Part shown: positions 51,395 to 60,960 of the stretch, piece by piece
How the letters are laid out: each line of letters starts with the position of its first letter
Numbering within the stretch: the stretch's first letter is position 1
Program-made: the position numbers and the translations under genes
Notes under the pieces: generated by a model
What the model was told of the DNA's origin: nothing
Databases searched by the model: none
What the model saw: the letters and a program-made list of their open reading frames with translations, nothing else
Virus record (IMG/VR): IMGVR_UViG_3300045996_002337
Coordinates: 285,661-349,660 of that record
Length of the DNA: 64,000 bases
Strand: one strand, 5' to 3'

Positions 51395-52927
51395 TCACAT
51401 CATGAACGGTACCGGCTCGTCTCCATACTGGTCACCCTCATTGGGTGCCACGTACTCGTTCACCTGCTTAAACGCGGTGTCGTTGTACTCAGAGAGACGC
51501 TTGAGCAAACGAATGACAATGATGGTTGCCATCACGCAGTCAGAAGTTGCTCCCGGCTTGTGATCATAAGAACCACCTCGAGCCACAAAGTTCTTCAGTT
51601 CGTCGAGTAAGACCGTTGATTTGATCTGAAGGCCACCATTGATTTTTTCAACCAGTGATTTGAGCTGCAAGCAGGCAAGCACCTTTGTTTTACCTGACGT
51701 GAAGACTCCAAGCTTATCTGAAGATGGTTGATCACAATAGAGCTCGGCGTGTTCAGGTTGCTTTTCATCATTTTGGTAGAGTGCTGACATGGCCTCACCA
51801 ATACCGTTTCGCTCGAATGTCCAAAGAACTTCGGCGCGTCCTCTACCAATTGGCGCCGAAAGTTTCTCGAGTATCCACTTTAGCTTTGCGTAGAGCAGGG
51901 GGATGTTGATATCGTTTGATCGCCACTCAGCCACCTGCTCGAGTGATGGAAACTCAAAGACCTCAATGACTGAGAAGTCATTGCCTGAGCCTGTGGCCGG
52001 GTCAACCCCAACCAGATATGTACGGCCTTGACCACCTAGCTCTTCTTCAGGTTTCCAAAACTTAAACCCGAGGTCCTCATAGAGATGATGCGTGGGCGCA
52101 ATTTGGATCAGCTTCATTGAGTTGATCAGCAACGCATCTGATGATAAGAATTCGCACCCGACTTCTTGCCGCGTAGCAAGGGGCCCGATCTGTCCAACCA
52201 TGTCATCCCAGTACTGATCATCCCGCTCGGGGTGTTCTTTCCAGTGCACTTGAAATGGCTTGTACACATTTGTGCCAGACATTGCTCCACGCCACAACGA
52301 GGCAAAGAGATCCGTGTCTCCGTTTGGGGTTGAGGAAATGATAGCAGAACCACCAGTAGACAGGGTAGGCGACAGCGAGTTCCACATCTGCTGCTGAATG
52401 CGTGGGTTAATAAACGCCAACTCGTCAAGATACAGCTTCGAGATGGACAGGCCTCGACCAGTCTTGTCAGTCGTTGCTTCACAAACAACTCGTGATCCGT
52501 TGTCAAGGTCAATCTTGTGCATGTTGTAGTACTTCAAACCTGGCTTGATCCAGCTTGGAAGTTCTTCATACGCGAGCTTAACGCGACCGGCAATTTCAAG
52601 GGCGTGAGAACCGTTCTTCGAGGCGATCAGCACGGTGGCATCGTCGTTGAAGAGCGCGTACCAAAGCAGGTACATGGCAGCCGTGACCGTCTTACCGCAC
52701 TGACGCGGTTGCAGCGTGATCGTAAAACGGTTGGAGTGAATGTGACGAACGAACCGTTCCTGGTAGTCAAACATGTTGAAGGGAACGATACCGCGGGTTG
52801 GGTGGTTCACCTTCACATAGGTTCGAATGAAGTACACTGGATCCCGCTTGCAACGCGCAAGCTCTTGGATCATGAACGGCGTATACTCGTCTGTTGCGTA
52901 CGCCTTCTTAAGCTGCGGGTTCTTCAT
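51395..52927 (-). CDS. terL: Terminase large subunit (T4 gp17-like)
   Basis: PRQCGKT, LYLDELAF, SSTPNG, GCEFL, nuclease YLVGVDPATG, SDCVMA. Confidence 0.95.
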   Translation of the reverse strand: MKNPQLKKAYATDEYTPFMIQELARCKRDPVYFIRTYVKVNHPTRGIVPFNMFDYQERFVRHIHSNRFTITLQPRQCGKTVTAAMYLLWYALFNDDATVLIASKNGSHALEIAGRVKLAYEELPSWIKPGLKYYNMHKIDLDNGSRVVCEATTDKTGRGLSISKLYLDELAFINPRIQQQMWNSLSPTLSTGGSAIISSTPNGDTDLFASLWRGAMSGTNVYKPFQVHWKEHPERDDQYWDDMVGQIGPLATRQEVGCEFLSSDALLINSMKLIQIAPTHHLYEDLGFKFWKPEEELGGQGRTYLVGVDPATGSGNDFSVIEVFEFPSLEQVAEWRSNDINIPLLYAKLKWILEKLSAPIGRGRAEVLWTFERNGIGEAMSALYQNDEKQPEHAELYCDQPSSDKLGVFTSGKTKVLACLQLKSLVEKINGGLQIKSTVLLDELKNFVARGGSYDHKPGATSDCVMATIIVIRLLKRLSEYNDTAFKQVNEYVAPNEGDQYGDEPVPFMM

Positions 52928-53706
52928 AGAAATTCACACTGATATTGTTCGCGCCACGCGTAGTCGCTAATAGACTGCTTGATTAAATCCTTGACTGCTT
53001 GATCCCACTGCACGTCGGCAAAGTCAACTTTAAATGGCGCAAACAGATTGGCGCCTTTGTTAGCTTCTGTCCAAATCTTTGCAAACATGTTATGCTTCCC
53101 ATTGGGCGTTGAGTGGATGGAAAATGCGACACCACATGACGTGAGGACTGGAAGCATCAACATTGCAATATTCTGCTGATCGCTTGGTGACAAAAAAGCA
53201 AAATTATCAAGATGCAACCGTGAAATTGCCATGCCCCTAACGGCCCTCGTGCTGGCAGCCCTAAAGAGAATTCGCGAACTATTTTCAAAGACGATTTCAT
53301 CTTTAGAGGAATAGCGAACCTTAGGCATGAGAAAAGTTGGCAACTTACTTACAGCAAAGTTTGCGATTTCAGAGGCCGAGGCGGCCATTGAATTGGTAAC
53401 TGTACCAAAAACCTCACTTTTACAATCATGGAAGATTGCTTCCCATAGCATAAATGCAATTGCTACGGTCGTCATGCCCACCTGTCTTGGCGCCATTGAA
53501 ACAACCATATCATTGCGCAGCATGTGGCGAATGTAGTCTTCTTGGTATGGGTGCAATGGGAGCGGCATGGCACCCATCTTTGGGTGCAAGTACTGAAAGT
53601 AGTTCTTTATGAAGTAGATTGGATCTTTGGCACAGCGAAAAATTTCTTCAACTTGCTCACGCGACTGGTCAGGGGCGCGGCCCCGCTTGGAGATAATGGT
53701 CTTCAT
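52924..53706 (-). CDS. TerL ATPase-domain paralog with degenerate Walker motifs, no nuclease domain
   Basis: PRQVGMTT (K to M), LHLDNFAF (E to N), HSTPNG, ends QYQCEFL. Confidence 0.85.
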   Translation of the reverse strand: MKTIISKRGRAPDQSREQVEEIFRCAKDPIYFIKNYFQYLHPKMGAMPLPLHPYQEDYIRHMLRNDMVVSMAPRQVGMTTVAIAFMLWEAIFHDCKSEVFGTVTNSMAASASEIANFAVSKLPTFLMPKVRYSSKDEIVFENSSRILFRAASTRAVRGMAISRLHLDNFAFLSPSDQQNIAMLMLPVLTSCGVAFSIHSTPNGKHNMFAKIWTEANKGANLFAPFKVDFADVQWDQAVKDLIKQSISDYAWREQYQCEFL

Positions 53707-54284
53707 TGATTGTCCTCGAAGATGAAGTTCTTAATTGCGCCCACAGTGTGTTCATGTAAGAGAACTTCGAAGTGATTGGCTTTGACTTCTACCTTCTTCC
53801 CGAATTTTAGTGCGCGTTGACTTGATACAGCAACGACGCTGTCATTCGGTTCCGGTGATGTGGGCAGGTGCCCTCCAGTAGAAATGATACTGAGAGTCGG
53901 AGTAGTCAACATGAGATCACAGCATCGTCTAACATGCGGGCCGCGTGGAATGATATCTCCCAGCACGGCTAAGCTGCCCGGGATCCAGCGCAAAGCTGCA
54001 GCGGCCCGTGATCCATTTAGTGGAGATGATATCGTTACAAGCTTTGTGATTCGTTCAGGTTCATCAGCTGCCACTAAGGTCGCGATAACCCCGCCAAGTG
54101 AATGACCGACGAGGATCAATTCGCCAGCTGGTAACTGCGCGCGAACCTGTTCTATCGAAACTGATAGGGGCTGATGCGACAAATAATCCACCATGATCGG
54201 TGAATGCTGGGGCAGCTTGTTGACGATGTATCCAAAGGAACGGTGACTGGAATTCAATCCATGCACGAAGACAATTTGTTTCAT
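53703..54284 (-). CDS. Alpha/beta hydrolase (lipase/esterase)
   Basis: VFVHGL, LVGHSLGG, ISSPLNGS, NDSVV, ANHFEVL; late promoter at 54303-54308. Confidence 0.85.
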   Translation of the reverse strand: MKQIVFVHGLNSSHRSFGYIVNKLPQHSPIMVDYLSHQPLSVSIEQVRAQLPAGELILVGHSLGGVIATLVAADEPERITKLVTISSPLNGSRAAAALRWIPGSLAVLGDIIPRGPHVRRCCDLMLTTPTLSIISTGGHLPTSPEPNDSVVAVSSQRALKFGKKVEVKANHFEVLLHEHTVGAIKNFIFEDNQ

Positions 54285-55313: not shown

Positions 55314-56099
55314 TCAAGCCTTGAACATCTTATGGTTGCCATCAGGTGCTTCAACGCGAACATATTTAACGTTCTCGTTGGTATAAAAGATGACTACCCA
55401 TTGTGCATCAGCGGCTTTAATAAGTTCACGCTTTAGCTGCTTGCCCTTCTGGATTACATTTTCTGCTTCGGTAGTACCAACAAGCTTGAGTCGATCGACT
55501 GGCACCTGAAGAAGTTCAGCAGCTTGCCCCATCGCGCGCGTTTCAGTGGCACTCACCCGCTCTGAAAGCAGGTCGATGCCCACGAGCTGCTTTTGAAACT
55601 CAAGTGCAAAAGCTTCATTCCACATCTTGATGATTGGCTTTGGTGGCGACTGTGTGGTCCAAACTGGAATGCGATACGCAGTGGCACCTGGATTTGAAAG
55701 AAGAAGCTTAACGTGCTTGGCTGCAATCTTTTGAGCCAATTTGATTCGTTTGGCACCCTCGCCCTTGATGCCTAATTCCTTCATTCGCTTTGCGATATTT
55801 GTCGTAATCGCAAGATTCTTTAGAGTGGAATAGAGCTGGCCAATCCAGTGATTGCCGTTCATACCCATGCCACCTGGCCTGAAAGGACCAGGACGGTACC
55901 ACCCACTTCCAACTGGGGGTGGCGTGACAGGTGGAATTTCGGGCACGTCAGTTGGAGTTCCACCATCACCAGGCGATGACTCGCCACCATCGCCACCATC
56001 CTCTTCTGAGATCAGTAGGAGCGGCAAAAGGGCCTCGTAAACTTCAAGGTTTTTGCCCTCGAGAAGTGGCTTAGCAGTCAGCAGTTCTTGTACCAGCAT
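55314..56099 (-). CDS. Hypothetical protein, possible internal head protein
   Basis: MLVQELL...LLEG N-terminus; acidic Gly/Pro linker; late promoter at 56123-56128. Confidence 0.6.
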   Translation of the reverse strand: MLVQELLTAKPLLEGKNLEVYEALLPLLLISEEDGGDGGESSPGDGGTPTDVPEIPPVTPPPVGSGWYRPGPFRPGGMGMNGNHWIGQLYSTLKNLAITTNIAKRMKELGIKGEGAKRIKLAQKIAAKHVKLLLSNPGATAYRIPVWTTQSPPKPIIKMWNEAFALEFQKQLVGIDLLSERVSATETRAMGQAAELLQVPVDRLKLVGTTEAENVIQKGKQLKRELIKAADAQWVVIFYTNENVKYVRVEAPDGNHKMFKA

Positions 56100-56129: not shown

Positions 56130-56864
56130 TTAGGTTTTGTACCAACCCTCAACCTTTTTGTTGAGGGTTTCCATGTCAAAAATTTCTGGCACGAGATACT
56201 TTTCTTTGGTATCTTCAAGGTGCTTTAGCATGCGTTGGCCAACAGGGTTCTGCACAGGAGAGTCATAGAAGTTTGTAACTTCCTTGAAGATCTTCAGCAT
56301 TGCAGCGTCGTCAAGTTCGCCCGGGTTGTTGTTCACTTCCTTGAAGAACTCAAATTTGCCTTTAAAGTACGCCTTATTGGCCCGAGAAACTTCATGCACC
56401 TTGTCAATGAACTCAGGGTTCACTTCACGGCCAATCTCTTCACCGCGCTTCTTTGCGCGGGCCTGGGCTACTTCAAGCTCTGTATCAACAAATACCATGC
56501 CGACGTCATAGCCAAGTGATTCAAGAATGCCTGCCCGGCCGAGGATGTTTGATGCATCGTTGGACGTACCATCGACGAACAGCGGCAGCATGCCGTTCAA
56601 ATAACCAGCGAGCGCGTTCTTTGTTAGGGGGCGGGTGCGGTCGCGGAAGAACGACTTCCATGTTTCGTCATTCGATGGCATGTCGAATTTCTTTGAAAGA
56701 AACTCAGTTGCCTTATCGGTGTTGACAACCTTCGGTGAAATTGGCCCTTGCAGCTTTGAGACAGTGTATGACTTACCTGCGCCCGGAATGCCAACAACGA
56801 AAACCGCTTTCAAAATGCCGCGGTCGTTGATGCTTTCGTCTAGAAATTGTTTGAACGTAATCAT
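56130..56864 (-). CDS. P-loop kinase (zeta-toxin/AAA_33-like) with capsid-targeting-like N-terminus
   Basis: MITFKQFLDES; AVFVVGIPGAGKS, VNTD, LFVDGT, ARAKKR. Confidence 0.75.
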   Translation of the reverse strand: MITFKQFLDESINDRGILKAVFVVGIPGAGKSYTVSKLQGPISPKVVNTDKATEFLSKKFDMPSNDETWKSFFRDRTRPLTKNALAGYLNGMLPLFVDGTSNDASNILGRAGILESLGYDVGMVFVDTELEVAQARAKKRGEEIGREVNPEFIDKVHEVSRANKAYFKGKFEFFKEVNNNPGELDDAAMLKIFKEVTNFYDSPVQNPVGQRMLKHLEDTKEKYLVPEIFDMETLNKKVEGWYKT

Positions 56865-57643
56865 GATAGTGGTTTGATAAATTCGCTGAATTGAATTGCA
56901 GGCACTGAAAGGTATTTACCGCTAAACCAGACCTCGTGCTGCTTTCCATCAAACTTGAAAGAGGATGGTGTCTCGAGCGCGACGCCCATACGATCGGGCT
57001 GAAAGATGTCAGGATATTCAGCGTGAAAATCAAGTAACCAGGCACCGCTAATTTTGCCAATGCGCTTGAATTCGGGCTTCGTTTGGTCAATCTTTCCATC
57101 GACCTCCAGACTGTTGAGAATCTGTTCCCACAGATTCTTCAAGTCTGCTGACAATGTTTGGGGCCCGTCTATGTGGAGAACGTCTTCAGCAATTGTTCGA
57201 ATGTAATAGGAAATGGTGCCGAGATTATTTGTTCGGTGTTCCGCAGCTTTAAATGGTCTAATGAAGTTAAAATCTACCTCTTTGGTAATCGCAAGCTTCG
57301 TCCCATTCACCGGAAAGATGGCATAAGTGTTATCTTCTGTCATTTCTGTGACTTCTGTGTCCATCGTAGTAGAGCAGAAGATTGACCTGTCGCGCTCTGG
57401 AAAATCGTTCCATGCTGGGAACGAGAAGATCCATTTGTGCATGGCGCCATTGCCAGACCGGCTGCGCGGGCGCACGCGCTCTGAAGAGTCGCGAACTCTA
57501 ATTGGTTCGTTCTTGCTAGCCGCCCGCCATAATGGGCGTGTCGGGGTCTTCCAATCGGAGCAGTGCTTCTTAAAGAACTCAAGCGCCTCCTCAGCAGAAA
57601 GGGTCCGATCTTCTTCAAGTAAAAATTCCTTGAATGTGATCAC
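56861..57643 (-). CDS. Putative capsid-internal protein, ADP-ribosyltransferase-like paralog B
   Basis: MITFKEFLLEE; PLWRA, RSRS, RDRSIFCST, YAIFP, HEVW. Confidence 0.55.
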   Translation of the reverse strand: MITFKEFLLEEDRTLSAEEALEFFKKHCSDWKTPTRPLWRAASKNEPIRVRDSSERVRPRSRSGNGAMHKWIFSFPAWNDFPERDRSIFCSTTMDTEVTEMTEDNTYAIFPVNGTKLAITKEVDFNFIRPFKAAEHRTNNLGTISYYIRTIAEDVLHIDGPQTLSADLKNLWEQILNSLEVDGKIDQTKPEFKRIGKISGAWLLDFHAEYPDIFQPDRMGVALETPSSFKFDGKQHEVWFSGKYLSVPAIQFSEFIKPLS

Positions 57644-58359
57644 TTCATTTCACCCATAAGTTGCTTCCACACATCCAGACGAAGCGCGACACACTTTCCT
57701 GAAACCCAGCACTCATGCGGTCCGTTCGGTGGGCGAGCGGTTGTAGTCAAGCGTAGGCGCATGTTTGTCTCAGAGTAGGCTTCTTGCAGTGCCTTTGCGA
57801 CGTCTAGCCCGCCAAATATATGAGAGAACAGCTCGCTATTAGGGTCTTCATAGTCTTGCATTGTTTCTTCAATGCCATTGACCATGTCCTCAAATGAGTA
57901 GTCTGGAATGTCAGCATCGCTAAAAATTTCATTCCATGATGAAAGTGATTGACTCGTGCTTTTGCCAATTTTAATTCGAGTGTGCCAAATATCTTCATCA
58001 GAAGTCACGCCAATCTTGACACCATCAAAAGGGATGATCGCGTAAACCTTACCATAGCTTAGTGCGTAGTCTTGATTGTCTGGGCTAGCCATGATGATGG
58101 ATTTGCTTCGAGCTGGGTAACCCTGTGATGGCAAAAATTCATCCATCACAACAGTGTAATGGTTCGTTGTGTTTGCAGAGCTGCGCCCACCCAACTCGCC
58201 CTGGATAATGTACGCCTCTTCTTCGGTCTTTCGGGAGCCACGCCAGAATGGACGCCTAATGTCCATGTCCTTGCAGTTCGCCTCAATGAGCTCGCGCGCC
58301 TTTTCGACGCTGATGTCTTGACGGTGTTTGGCTTCTCTTAAGAAGTCTTTGAATCTCAT
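57640..58359 (-). CDS. Putative capsid-internal protein, ADP-ribosyltransferase-like paralog C
   Basis: Real start MRFKDFLREA; PFWRG, RSS, RSKSIIMAS, YGKVYAIIP, HECW. Confidence 0.55.
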   Translation of the reverse strand: MRFKDFLREAKHRQDISVEKARELIEANCKDMDIRRPFWRGSRKTEEEAYIIQGELGGRSSANTTNHYTVVMDEFLPSQGYPARSKSIIMASPDNQDYALSYGKVYAIIPFDGVKIGVTSDEDIWHTRIKIGKSTSQSLSSWNEIFSDADIPDYSFEDMVNGIEETMQDYEDPNSELFSHIFGGLDVAKALQEAYSETNMRLRLTTTARPPNGPHECWVSGKCVALRLDVWKQLMGEMK

Positions 58360-58360
58360 A

Positions 58361-58627
58361 TTAGCTCGGCATGCTATAGCCTGCAGGAAGCAGGCTAGGG
58401 TTGTTGTTGGCAGCTGCGATGGCAACCTTCTTAGCGGCTGTTAGGGTTCTAGTAATTCTTCGGCCCTTTGATTTCATCCGCAGATCAAATCCCCCGCCTT
58501 TTGACGTAAGCTTGGAGATAGACCCAACTTGTTGATCGCCCGATTTGACGAACCACTTGAACTGATCATCAGGATCGGGCACAAATGTGAGCTTGGCCTC
58601 GCTCTCAAACAATTCTTGAACTCTCAT
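58361..58627 (-). CDS. Small putative internal head protein
   Basis: MRVQELFESE N-terminus. Confidence 0.55.
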   Translation of the reverse strand: MRVQELFESEAKLTFVPDPDDQFKWFVKSGDQQVGSISKLTSKGGGFDLRMKSKGRRITRTLTAAKKVAIAAANNNPSLLPAGYSMPS

Positions 58628-59097
58628 TTAACTTCCTTGACTTCAGCGTCAATGCTGATCATTCTCATGATTTCATCGCGGCTGGCAACCACGACGTTGT
58701 TTTGCGTTTTATTTGCAAATGGTACAAAGGCAGCGTTGCGCTTGCGTTCGCCTTTGACCTTTGCGCGAGTTGCTGCGGCGCTGAGGGCAATGTTCAGGTA
58801 GTTAGCTGCCACTTCGGCGTTTCTAGCTGCATACCGTGGCTCAATGATCTCGGTGTAGGCGGTCTGCTGGTTGAAGGCGTCGATCGCAGCTTGATAGACG
58901 GTATCAATCTTACCGTCAATCTCCTTGTCTTCCTCATCCTTCTCAGGCGGAGCTTCTTCACCTGACGCCATTTCAGCAAGTTCACCTTCAGTGATCTGCT
59001 CGTACTCATCTTTGTCTTCGTCGAGGCGAGTAGCCGGTGTATTGAACAGCTCGTCAAGAGGATTCGAAAGCATTGGGTTGTTTGATTTGATCGTCAT
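58624..59097 (-). CDS. Probable terminase small subunit (T4 gp16-like)
   Basis: Acidic N-terminus, EPR....EVAANYL helix pair, C-terminal QNNVVVASRDEIMRMI; sits in the packaging block. Confidence 0.5.
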   Translation of the reverse strand: MTIKSNNPMLSNPLDELFNTPATRLDEDKDEYEQITEGELAEMASGEEAPPEKDEEDKEIDGKIDTVYQAAIDAFNQQTAYTEIIEPRYAARNAEVAANYLNIALSAAATRAKVKGERKRNAAFVPFANKTQNNVVVASRDEIMRMISIDAEVKEVK

Positions 59098-59555
59098 TTT
59101 TTCTTACTCCTCTTTGGAACTTGTCGGAACATGCTCTTCTCCGTGATTACGCGGAACACGGCTCCTTGAGATTCTGCGAAGATGCTTGCCGCCTTCCACT
59201 TCGCTTGGTTTACGGCATACGCCATTTTGTCTCGCTCTGAGGAACCTGCCGTTAAAACAGATTCCTTCATAGGTTTAACCTCTACGATTTCCTTCTTGAG
59301 GTTTCCTAGATTGTCACGGTACATGATAATGAAGTCGGGAAAGTACCGTGAAATTTTAGGGCGACCATTTTCATCAATCTTGATTGGGTTGACGTATGGA
59401 ATGGCAAGCTCTTCAGAGCCCCAGCGCAGCACCGCGTTGTTCGTATCTAGCCACTGCATGAACCGTAATTCCCAAGATGAACGGAACATTATCTTGTTGA
59501 CATTGCCAACATACTTCTGGGGGTTCTTGGGAATGAATCTGCCGCCGTGCGCCAT
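59094..59555 (-). CDS. Head completion nuclease (T4 gp4-like, TnsA-type)
   Basis: GRFIPKNPQKYVG, FRSSWELRFM, WGSEELAIPY, RYFPDF, VEVKP, NQAKW. Confidence 0.9.
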   Translation of the reverse strand: MAHGGRFIPKNPQKYVGNVNKIMFRSSWELRFMQWLDTNNAVLRWGSEELAIPYVNPIKIDENGRPKISRYFPDFIIMYRDNLGNLKKEIVEVKPMKESVLTAGSSERDKMAYAVNQAKWKAASIFAESQGAVFRVITEKSMFRQVPKRSKKK

Positions 59556-59556
59556 G

Positions 59557-60960
59557 TTAATCCTCACCCCAAGCCGGTTTGGAATCTGGCACCCATGTTA
59601 CATGTCCCGTAGAACTTGTGACAAGTTGACCTGTTTCCTCTGCTGCTTCTGCGTGTCGGTTATTTACTACCGGCGGGGCTGATGGAAGATCAGCCGATCG
59701 AGTTACGCCAGAAACTGCGGTTGGACCACCTTCAGCGCTGTCAATGACGGTCGCGCTGTACGCGCGCACGGCCCCTTGATTGACCGCTGTCGACATACCA
59801 GAGGCCAGGTCGCGTGCGGCTGCGCCAATCACACCACCTAAAATGTTTGATGCCTGTGAGCCAATAAGCGAAGCAAAGCGGCCCTTACCTGCAACTGATT
59901 GCACGGCGCGGCTAATTGCGGTAGATGAAATTGACTGTGCCGCCCGGCCCACTTGATTTGTGATGATGTTAGCGAAGGGGCTTCCGCCACCAGCTTGCGT
60001 CTGCGCACTTTGATTTACACTCATGTCAACAGGGGCTCCGCCAACTCCAGGGACCGCGATGCTATAGGCTGGTCCATCCATTGTTGTCATTGCACCGACA
60101 TCGACAATTTCCATCCAGTCGTAGTCGAACTGCATGGTCATCAAGGAAACATCAGATGTTTCATGGTTAAGGTCATCAAGATCGAAGGACACAATGCGGG
60201 CATTCAAGAAGTCATAAATGACTTCCTTTGCAGAACCGCCTAATTGTGAACCCGGGTCAACGAACATCTGTTTCACGCGAATGGCGGAGATGACATTACC
60301 AACTTGACTGTCTGTTACCCCACGAATGGCGTTGTCGCCAGCTTTTGGATCATTTGGCGCCGAGAACATCATACCGTTGCCGGTTGAGAGGGTGTTAGGG
60401 TCTGGTGGTCTGGTGGTGCCTTCACGCAGAAGCTGACGTCGGGTAATTGGTGACTGCAGCATCATCAAGGCGCGGAAGAAGTTCAGCACTCGGTTGCCAG
60501 TATCATCCATGAACGTGATTGTCAATTCGCGGTGGCGAATACGCTTTAGCACCTTCGTGCGAAAGTTGTACATGTTGACGTCGTCTTCATACTCGAAGTC
60601 AATCTTGGGACGGTCAACTGACTTGACCATGAATGTAAAGTCGTTGGCCTTGGCACCACCGAAGATCGTAGGGAAGGCAGCCACTGCTTCAGGCGTAAAG
60701 ACAAATTCCACCTTGAATAGAAATTTGAGCTTTGGTCTGTAACTTGTTCCGCCTGCTAAAGCGTGTGCATACGAGCTGGCGTAAAAGGAACCATCACCGC
60801 GATTAAATGGTACTTGACCACCGGGTAGGGGCTGAGGTTGACCTAGAGCAGGTCCTAGTACTCCGCGGCTGAATGTTTCAACCGCAGCACCAAATTTGTC
60901 TGATGCTTCTTTTTCAAGAGCGATCTTTGTGCTGTCGAGGAAGGGTTTTAGGTTTGCCAT
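59557..60960 (-). CDS. Tail-tube-fold baseplate protein (gp48/gp54/gp19-like)
   Basis: PKLKFLFKVEF, VKSVDRPKIDFE, NMYN, ELTITFMDD, FDLDDLNHE; late promoter at 60985-60990. Confidence 0.7.
   Translation of the reverse strand: MANLKPFLDSTKIALEKEASDKFGAAVETFSRGVLGPALGQPQPLPGGQVPFNRGDGSFYASSYAHALAGGTSYRPKLKFLFKVEFVFTPEAVAAFPTIFGGAKANDFTFMVKSVDRPKIDFEYEDDVNMYNFRTKVLKRIRHRELTITFMDDTGNRVLNFFRALMMLQSPITRRQLLREGTTRPPDPNTLSTGNGMMFSAPNDPKAGDNAIRGVTDSQVGNVISAIRVKQMFVDPGSQLGGSAKEVIYDFLNARIVSFDLDDLNHETSDVSLMTMQFDYDWMEIVDVGAMTTMDGPAYSIAVPGVGGAPVDMSVNQSAQTQAGGGSPFANIITNQVGRAAQSISSTAISRAVQSVAGKGRFASLIGSQASNILGGVIGAAARDLASGMSTAVNQGAVRAYSATVIDSAEGGPTAVSGVTRSADLPSAPPVVNNRHAEAAEETGQLVTSSTGHVTWVPDSKPAWGED

Follow-up and report, generated by a model that had tools for sequence, protein, structure and literature searches.

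A catalytically degenerate copy of the terminase ATPase domain encoded beside terL in a jumbo phage

The large terminase (TerL) is the one near-universal enzyme of tailed phages and a main target of bacterial pattern-recognition immunity. A representative is gp17 of phage T4, whose N-terminal ATPase domain has been crystallised (PDB 2o0h/2o0j, 3cpe; the ATPase construct has 357-360 residues) and which also has an internal product, gp17', that starts at M88. The gene position directly upstream of terL is usually taken by the small terminase (TerS), which in T4 is gp16. Stand-alone proteins resembling the TerL ATPase domain also have a precedent: the uncharacterised T4 protein vs.8 coexists with a complete TerL, keeps both Walker motifs and lies far from gene 17 (PMC13601566). 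TerL ATPase domains are known immune triggers, and the ATPase domain alone, as well as vs.8, activates the defence protein EcAvs2. In particular, Avs2 and Avs3 recognise the ATP/Mg-bound active site and active-site residues (PMC13601566).

In this context, we analysed a terminase locus in a 64-kb stretch of DNA (hereafter the window, 64,000 nucleotides), which is the last part of a 349,660-bp jumbo-phage record estimated to be 97% complete. The original prediction, made from the sequence alone, was that a 260-aa open reading frame (ORF) directly upstream of terL aligns end to end with the TerL ATPase domain, lacks the Walker A Lys, the catalytic Glu and the whole nuclease domain, and does not look like decay, since its frame is intact and coupled to terL by an ATGA overlap. 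It was further proposed that the protein is either a decoy for terminase sensors or a pseudo-enzyme subunit or regulator of the packaging ring. The observation itself is confirmed by our analysis. The interpretation is supported only in part: the reading as an intact, selected, catalytically degenerate paralogue holds, whereas neither of the two proposed functions is shown.

A stand-alone TerL ATPase-domain paralogue coupled to terL

The features of the locus on which the analysis rests are as follows (positions are those of the window).

52924..53706 (-), stand-alone TerL ATPase-domain paralogue lacking the catalytic residues (260 aa, ATG start and TGA stop)
53470..53490 (-), degenerate Walker A motif PRQVGMT, in which the Lys is replaced by Met78 while Arg74 and Gly77 are kept
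53194..53217 (-), degenerate Walker B motif LHLDNFAF, in which the catalytic Glu is replaced by Asn168 while Asp167 is kept
53236..53238 (-), Arg157, aligned with the invariant Arg of the TerL TGRGLS motif, 10 residues before the catalytic position (putative trans-acting arginine finger, assigned by position and by analogy with P74-26 TerL R139)
53098..53112 (-), retained coupling (C) motif STPNG
53677..53706 (-), conserved basic N-terminal tail MKTIISKRGR, of low pLDDT and probably flexible
51395..52927 (-), complete TerL (510 aa) with an intact ATPase (PRQCGKT, LDE) and a nuclease domain
53703..54284 (-), alpha/beta-hydrolase (lipase_3-like, 193 aa), the conserved 5' neighbour
58624..59097 (-), probable T4-type small terminase TerS (157 aa)
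59094..59567 (-), gp4-like head-completion nuclease

BLASTP of the 260-aa protein against residues 20-261 of the adjacent TerL gives 34% identity over 244 columns (E 9e-56), and the Pfam family Terminase_6N (PF03237) is matched at 36.6 bits against a gathering cut-off of 22. The motif pairs HPKMG/HPTRG, PRQVGMT/PRQCGKT and LHLDNFAF/LYLDELAF are present (paralogue/TerL), together with STPNG and CEFL. The protein ends at CEFL, which is the border between the ATPase and nuclease domains, and thus has no RNase H-like nuclease domain. Within the whole genome only these two TerL-like places were found.

The paralogue shares ATGA overlaps with both of its neighbours: its stop overlaps the ATG of terL (52924-52927, tcat on the + strand), and its start overlaps the stop of the hydrolase gene (53703-53706). 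No Shine-Dalgarno sequence is evident for terL, while the paralogue has GAGGA 7 nt upstream. A scan for promoters and terminators found fewer sites than in shuffled sequences.

An AlphaFold2 model built with a 22-sequence family alignment is confident (pLDDT 92.9), and its best PDB matches are structures of the T4 gp17 ATPase domain (2o0h; TM 0.85, rmsd 2.2 A, 28% identity), followed by other large terminases. A complex prediction of TerL plus the paralogue, with an alignment from which three GenBank phage TerLs were left out, returned a score of 0.00 and no verdict, and counts neither for nor against binding.

A family that is conserved but accessory

The paralogue is not a one-off. A word-indexed protein search found two homologues at 34-36% identity, each lying directly upstream of a complete TerL with a 4-bp overlap. 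A scan of IMG/VR followed by ORF and profile analysis then revealed short ORFs covering only the TerL ATPase domain upstream of terL in about 20 further loci (loci fetched for comparison are numbered L003 to L099 below), downstream of terL in two (L053, L067) and as two tandem copies in one (L016). Contigs from ENA, JGI, Logan and IMG/VR show the same upstream position with a 4-bp overlap, and the independent ENA and Logan contigs show the same order of hydrolase, paralogue and TerL. An exhaustive profile search returned, among its best 150 hits (representatives of 50%-identity clusters), 70 short proteins of 340 aa or less, of which 46 lack both the Lys and the Glu; there are therefore at least 46 such clusters. 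All those checked are unnamed metagenomic proteins. In contrast, tblastn of the paralogue against 50,697 phage records found only TerLs, at 33-34% identity.

The loss of the catalytic residues is systematic. About 60 full-length TerLs in the fetched loci all have GK[ST] and DE, whereas nearly every short paralogue has M, T, I, V, L, G or F in place of the Lys and N, D, S, Q, C or G in place of the Glu; the three nearest paralogues all read LDNFA. A minority of short copies keep GKT and DE and still sit beside a complete TerL (L074:3325-3981 and L099:4001-4768, protein P0119), and are possible still-active members of the same family. This suggests that catalysis became dispensable for the role. 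Other odd terminases surfaced among the search hits. Four metagenomic TerL-like proteins of full length (429-684 aa) have Ile in place of the Walker A Lys; three of them (P0134, P0140, P0151) keep the catalytic Glu, while P0007 reads ED at the Walker B position. In addition, many long TerL relatives (e.g. P0040, P0043, P0051, P0090) have the Walker A region interrupted, most likely by inteins.

Retention was measured in 56 non-redundant paralogues that had been selected for lacking the Lys and the Glu (residues in TerL numbering). The P-loop Arg (R75) is kept in 100%, the P-loop Gly (G78) in 98%, the adenine-contacting Gln (Q56) in 89%, and W89 and N143 in 100% each. The position aligned with the invariant GRG arginine of TerL (R158) is Arg in 55% and Lys in 16%, against 99% Arg in TerL. 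The Walker B Asp (D168) is kept in 66% and T152 in 11%, while in the coupling motif the Ser is kept in 96%, the Thr in 61% and the Pro in 79%. Conservation stays close to that of TerL in four stretches (columns 21-40, 71-100, 141-150 and 251-260), namely the N-terminal C..DP.YF helix, the P-loop and its following helix, the NGS strand and the C-terminal R.EY.CEF element, and relaxes around Walker B and the coupling motif. The family also has its own basic N-terminal tail (ISKRGR, SKRAK and similar forms), which is related to the NPxLK(R/K)A tail of TerL.

Conservation and dN/dS across relatives had been named beforehand as the test of this reading, and both argue against decay. Since the window's own copy has no close relative and dS is saturated against all relatives, selection was measured on relatives only. 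The closest paralogue pair (L037/L041, 86% identical) has dN/dS 0.08-0.115 at dS 0.67-0.82, similar to their TerL ATPase domains (0.09-0.13). For L020 against these two, the paralogue gives 0.31-0.37 and TerL 0.05-0.09. Across other pairs, paralogue dN is 4-10 times that of the neighbouring TerL ATPase domain; for example, the L074/L075 paralogues are 31% identical against 88% for their TerL ATPase domains. In a tree of ATPase domains, all 73 TerLs lie on one side of a branch (SH-aLRT 97) and all 22 paralogues on the other, although the paralogue branches are long and long-branch attraction is possible. Paralogues are no closer to their own TerL than to others (median rank about 30 of 69). Together, this points to an old duplication followed by fast but constrained evolution.

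The gene is nevertheless accessory. On a TerL tree, 23 of 58 related metagenomic loci carry the paralogue, with at least 12 gains or losses; in the window's own clade (support 99) it is 15 of 21, with at least 6 changes. Several close relatives lack it (L011, L012, L013, L018, L019, L076 and L082), and in these the same hydrolase gene overlaps terL directly. The hydrolase, whose role next to the terminase is unexplained, is thus the conserved, translationally coupled 5' neighbour of terL across this phage group, with or without the paralogue between them (also L003, L096 and L097). Homing-endonuclease genes (GIY-YIG; NUMOD3-containing) are inserted at the same junction in two relatives (L003:5438-6004 and L040:2916-4001), making it a hot spot for insertions. 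The nearest cultured phages, RsoM2USA, XacN1 and PA5oct (TerL identity 37-47%), have no adjacent paralogue, and the gene is absent from RsoM2USA and PA5oct. In Xanthomonas phage XacN1, a 261-aa ORF about 5.5 kb from terL (L095:952-1734, -) aligns weakly with the family profile (hhalign E 2.4e-4, probability 44%); its P-loop is KRMHGITT and its Walker B is YIFDI, and it may be a remote member lacking the catalytic residues.

A probable TerS was found about 5 kb from terL, at 58624-59097. Its best PHROG is phrog_445 (TerS; T4 gp16 hits it at 5.5e-15), matched at E 0.007-0.017 over nearly the whole profile and also hit by 8 of 26 homologues (best 3e-4). In the ESM Atlas, 65 of the 100 nearest clusters carry PF11053 (score 0.94). 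There are 659 homologues, of which at least 120 are 62-78% identical, and the AlphaFold2 model shows a long helical hairpin, although it is weak (pLDDT 65). The assignment is probable and not proven, as direct comparisons with T4 gp16 (BLASTP, hhalign), with Pfam (HMMER, and member by member) and with PDB sequences gave nothing significant, and the TerS families PF11053, PF03592, PF16677 and PF05119, as well as phrog_735, had no match in the genome. The candidate lies directly after the gp4-like (TnsA-fold) nuclease (phrog_218, 4.3e-44), and a TnsA-like gene followed by a gene of about 154 aa recurs in L003 and L099. Between this pair and the hydrolase lie three tandem ORFs of 244-261 aa that share phrog_12810 (56130-56864, 56861-57643 and 57640-58425, all -). 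One of them (56130-56864) looks like a Zeta-toxin/AAA_33-like kinase, which is also conserved at this position in L003 and L096. A fourth ORF of similar size (55314-56099, -) had no PHROG hit.

Possible roles of the paralogue

What the analysis establishes is that the protein belongs to a large, old, unnamed family of stand-alone TerL ATPase-domain paralogues, most of which have lost the Walker A Lys and the catalytic Glu but keep the fold, the P-loop Arg and Gly, the adenine-contacting Gln, the N- and C-terminal elements that correspond to gp17 N-subdomain II, and a basic N-terminal tail. It is likewise established that the gene is intact, that the family is under selection, that it is accessory, and that by its overlaps it is made from the same late message just before TerL. 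Function, including any binding, is inferred. Our tentative preference, held with less than even confidence, is that the protein works by binding and not by hydrolysis, as a non-essential, non-catalytic partner or modulator of the packaging machinery. In this view it would occupy a site that the TerL ATPase domain normally uses on TerL itself, on TerS or on the portal, and so tune assembly, initiation or nuclease/ATPase control; it would not be a core motor part. The preserved parts are interaction-competent scaffolds shared with TerL, which is compatible with the 'subunit or regulator' half of the original prediction. On the other hand, no interaction is shown, packaging does not need the gene in the relatives that lack it, its fast evolution also fits an arms-race gene, and a dead subunit inside a coordinated ring could harm the motor.

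An anti-defence role is possible but less likely. Here the protein would be a TerL look-alike that blocks or soaks up TerL-sensing receptors (Avs1-3, Upx), or a bodyguard that binds nascent TerL and hides the surface those sensors read. The patchy distribution, the rapid divergence next to a slow TerL, the tandem copies in one locus and the production together with TerL all fit such a role, and loss of the ATP site could stop the protein from setting off the alarm itself. A simple Avs decoy is disfavoured, however, because the ATPase domain alone and vs.8 activate EcAvs2 rather than inhibit it, and because the protein lacks the ATP-bound active site that Avs2 and Avs3 read, making it a poor mimic of what is sensed (PMC13601566). 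The known anti-Avs proteins ORF55 and ORF83 are not TerL mimics. A shield or a non-triggering blocker remains possible. Less likely still is a weapon against competing phages or satellites, that is, a dominant-negative mimic that poisons the terminase or portal of a co-infecting relative while sparing its own. The accessory, fast-evolving pattern and the loss of catalytic residues in an otherwise intact scaffold would fit, but there is no direct evidence, and tight coupling to its own terL would expose its own motor first. Replacement of TerS, suggested by the coupled position in the usual terS slot and the absence of Pfam TerS families from the genome, is largely refuted by the probable TerS elsewhere (which is highly conserved in the group), by close relatives that lack the paralogue altogether and by an ASCE ATPase fold. 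A functionless leftover of a partial terL duplication, perhaps created by homing-endonuclease activity, would account for dispensability, yet it is contradicted by intact frames in more than 20 loci at 25-38% mutual identity, by dN/dS of 0.08-0.37 in relatives, by the family's own conserved motifs, by the confident model and by the fact that the paralogue is not nearest to its own TerL.

Either of the two leading readings would matter. A widespread, selected copy of the TerL motor domain without its catalytic residues, co-translated with the real enzyme, could be an unrecognised non-catalytic component or regulator of a viral packaging motor, or a new class of immune-evasion protein. In addition, the natural series from copies with intact motifs to those without them provides a ready set of proteins for asking what the TerL ATPase domain does apart from hydrolysis.

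Comparison with described terminase proteins

Literature searches for a terminase paralogue, a TerL decoy or a TerL-mimic anti-Avs protein found no description of such a family in the library searched. The closest precedent, T4 vs.8, is likewise a separate phage protein that resembles the TerL ATPase domain and coexists with a complete TerL. It differs in its intact Walker A and B motifs, in being unlinked to gene 17 and in its activation of EcAvs2; moreover, it has no detectable BLASTP similarity to the paralogue (E 0.7) and was not found by the family profile. Split terL genes in related contigs (L025, L026, L029, L038, L042, L043, L077) also give short ORFs that end near the ATPase/nuclease border, but those halves keep GK[ST] and DE and are followed by a nuclease-only ORF, whereas here the next gene is a complete 510-aa TerL. 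TerS of the T4 gp16 type shares the coupled position directly upstream of terL, but its fold is unrelated.

The ATPase domain of T4 gp17 has the same fold over the whole length of the paralogue, with the Q motif, the P-loop Arg and Gly and the TPNG coupling motif in common. The domain borders match as well: gp17 M88 aligns with residue 1 and gp17 F356 with the C-terminus. The TerL of this clade likewise starts exactly where gp17' does, and so lacks the first 87 residues of gp17. What sets the paralogue apart from the gp17 domain is the absence of the Walker A Lys, the catalytic Glu and the nuclease domain, and its existence as a separate gene beside a complete TerL.
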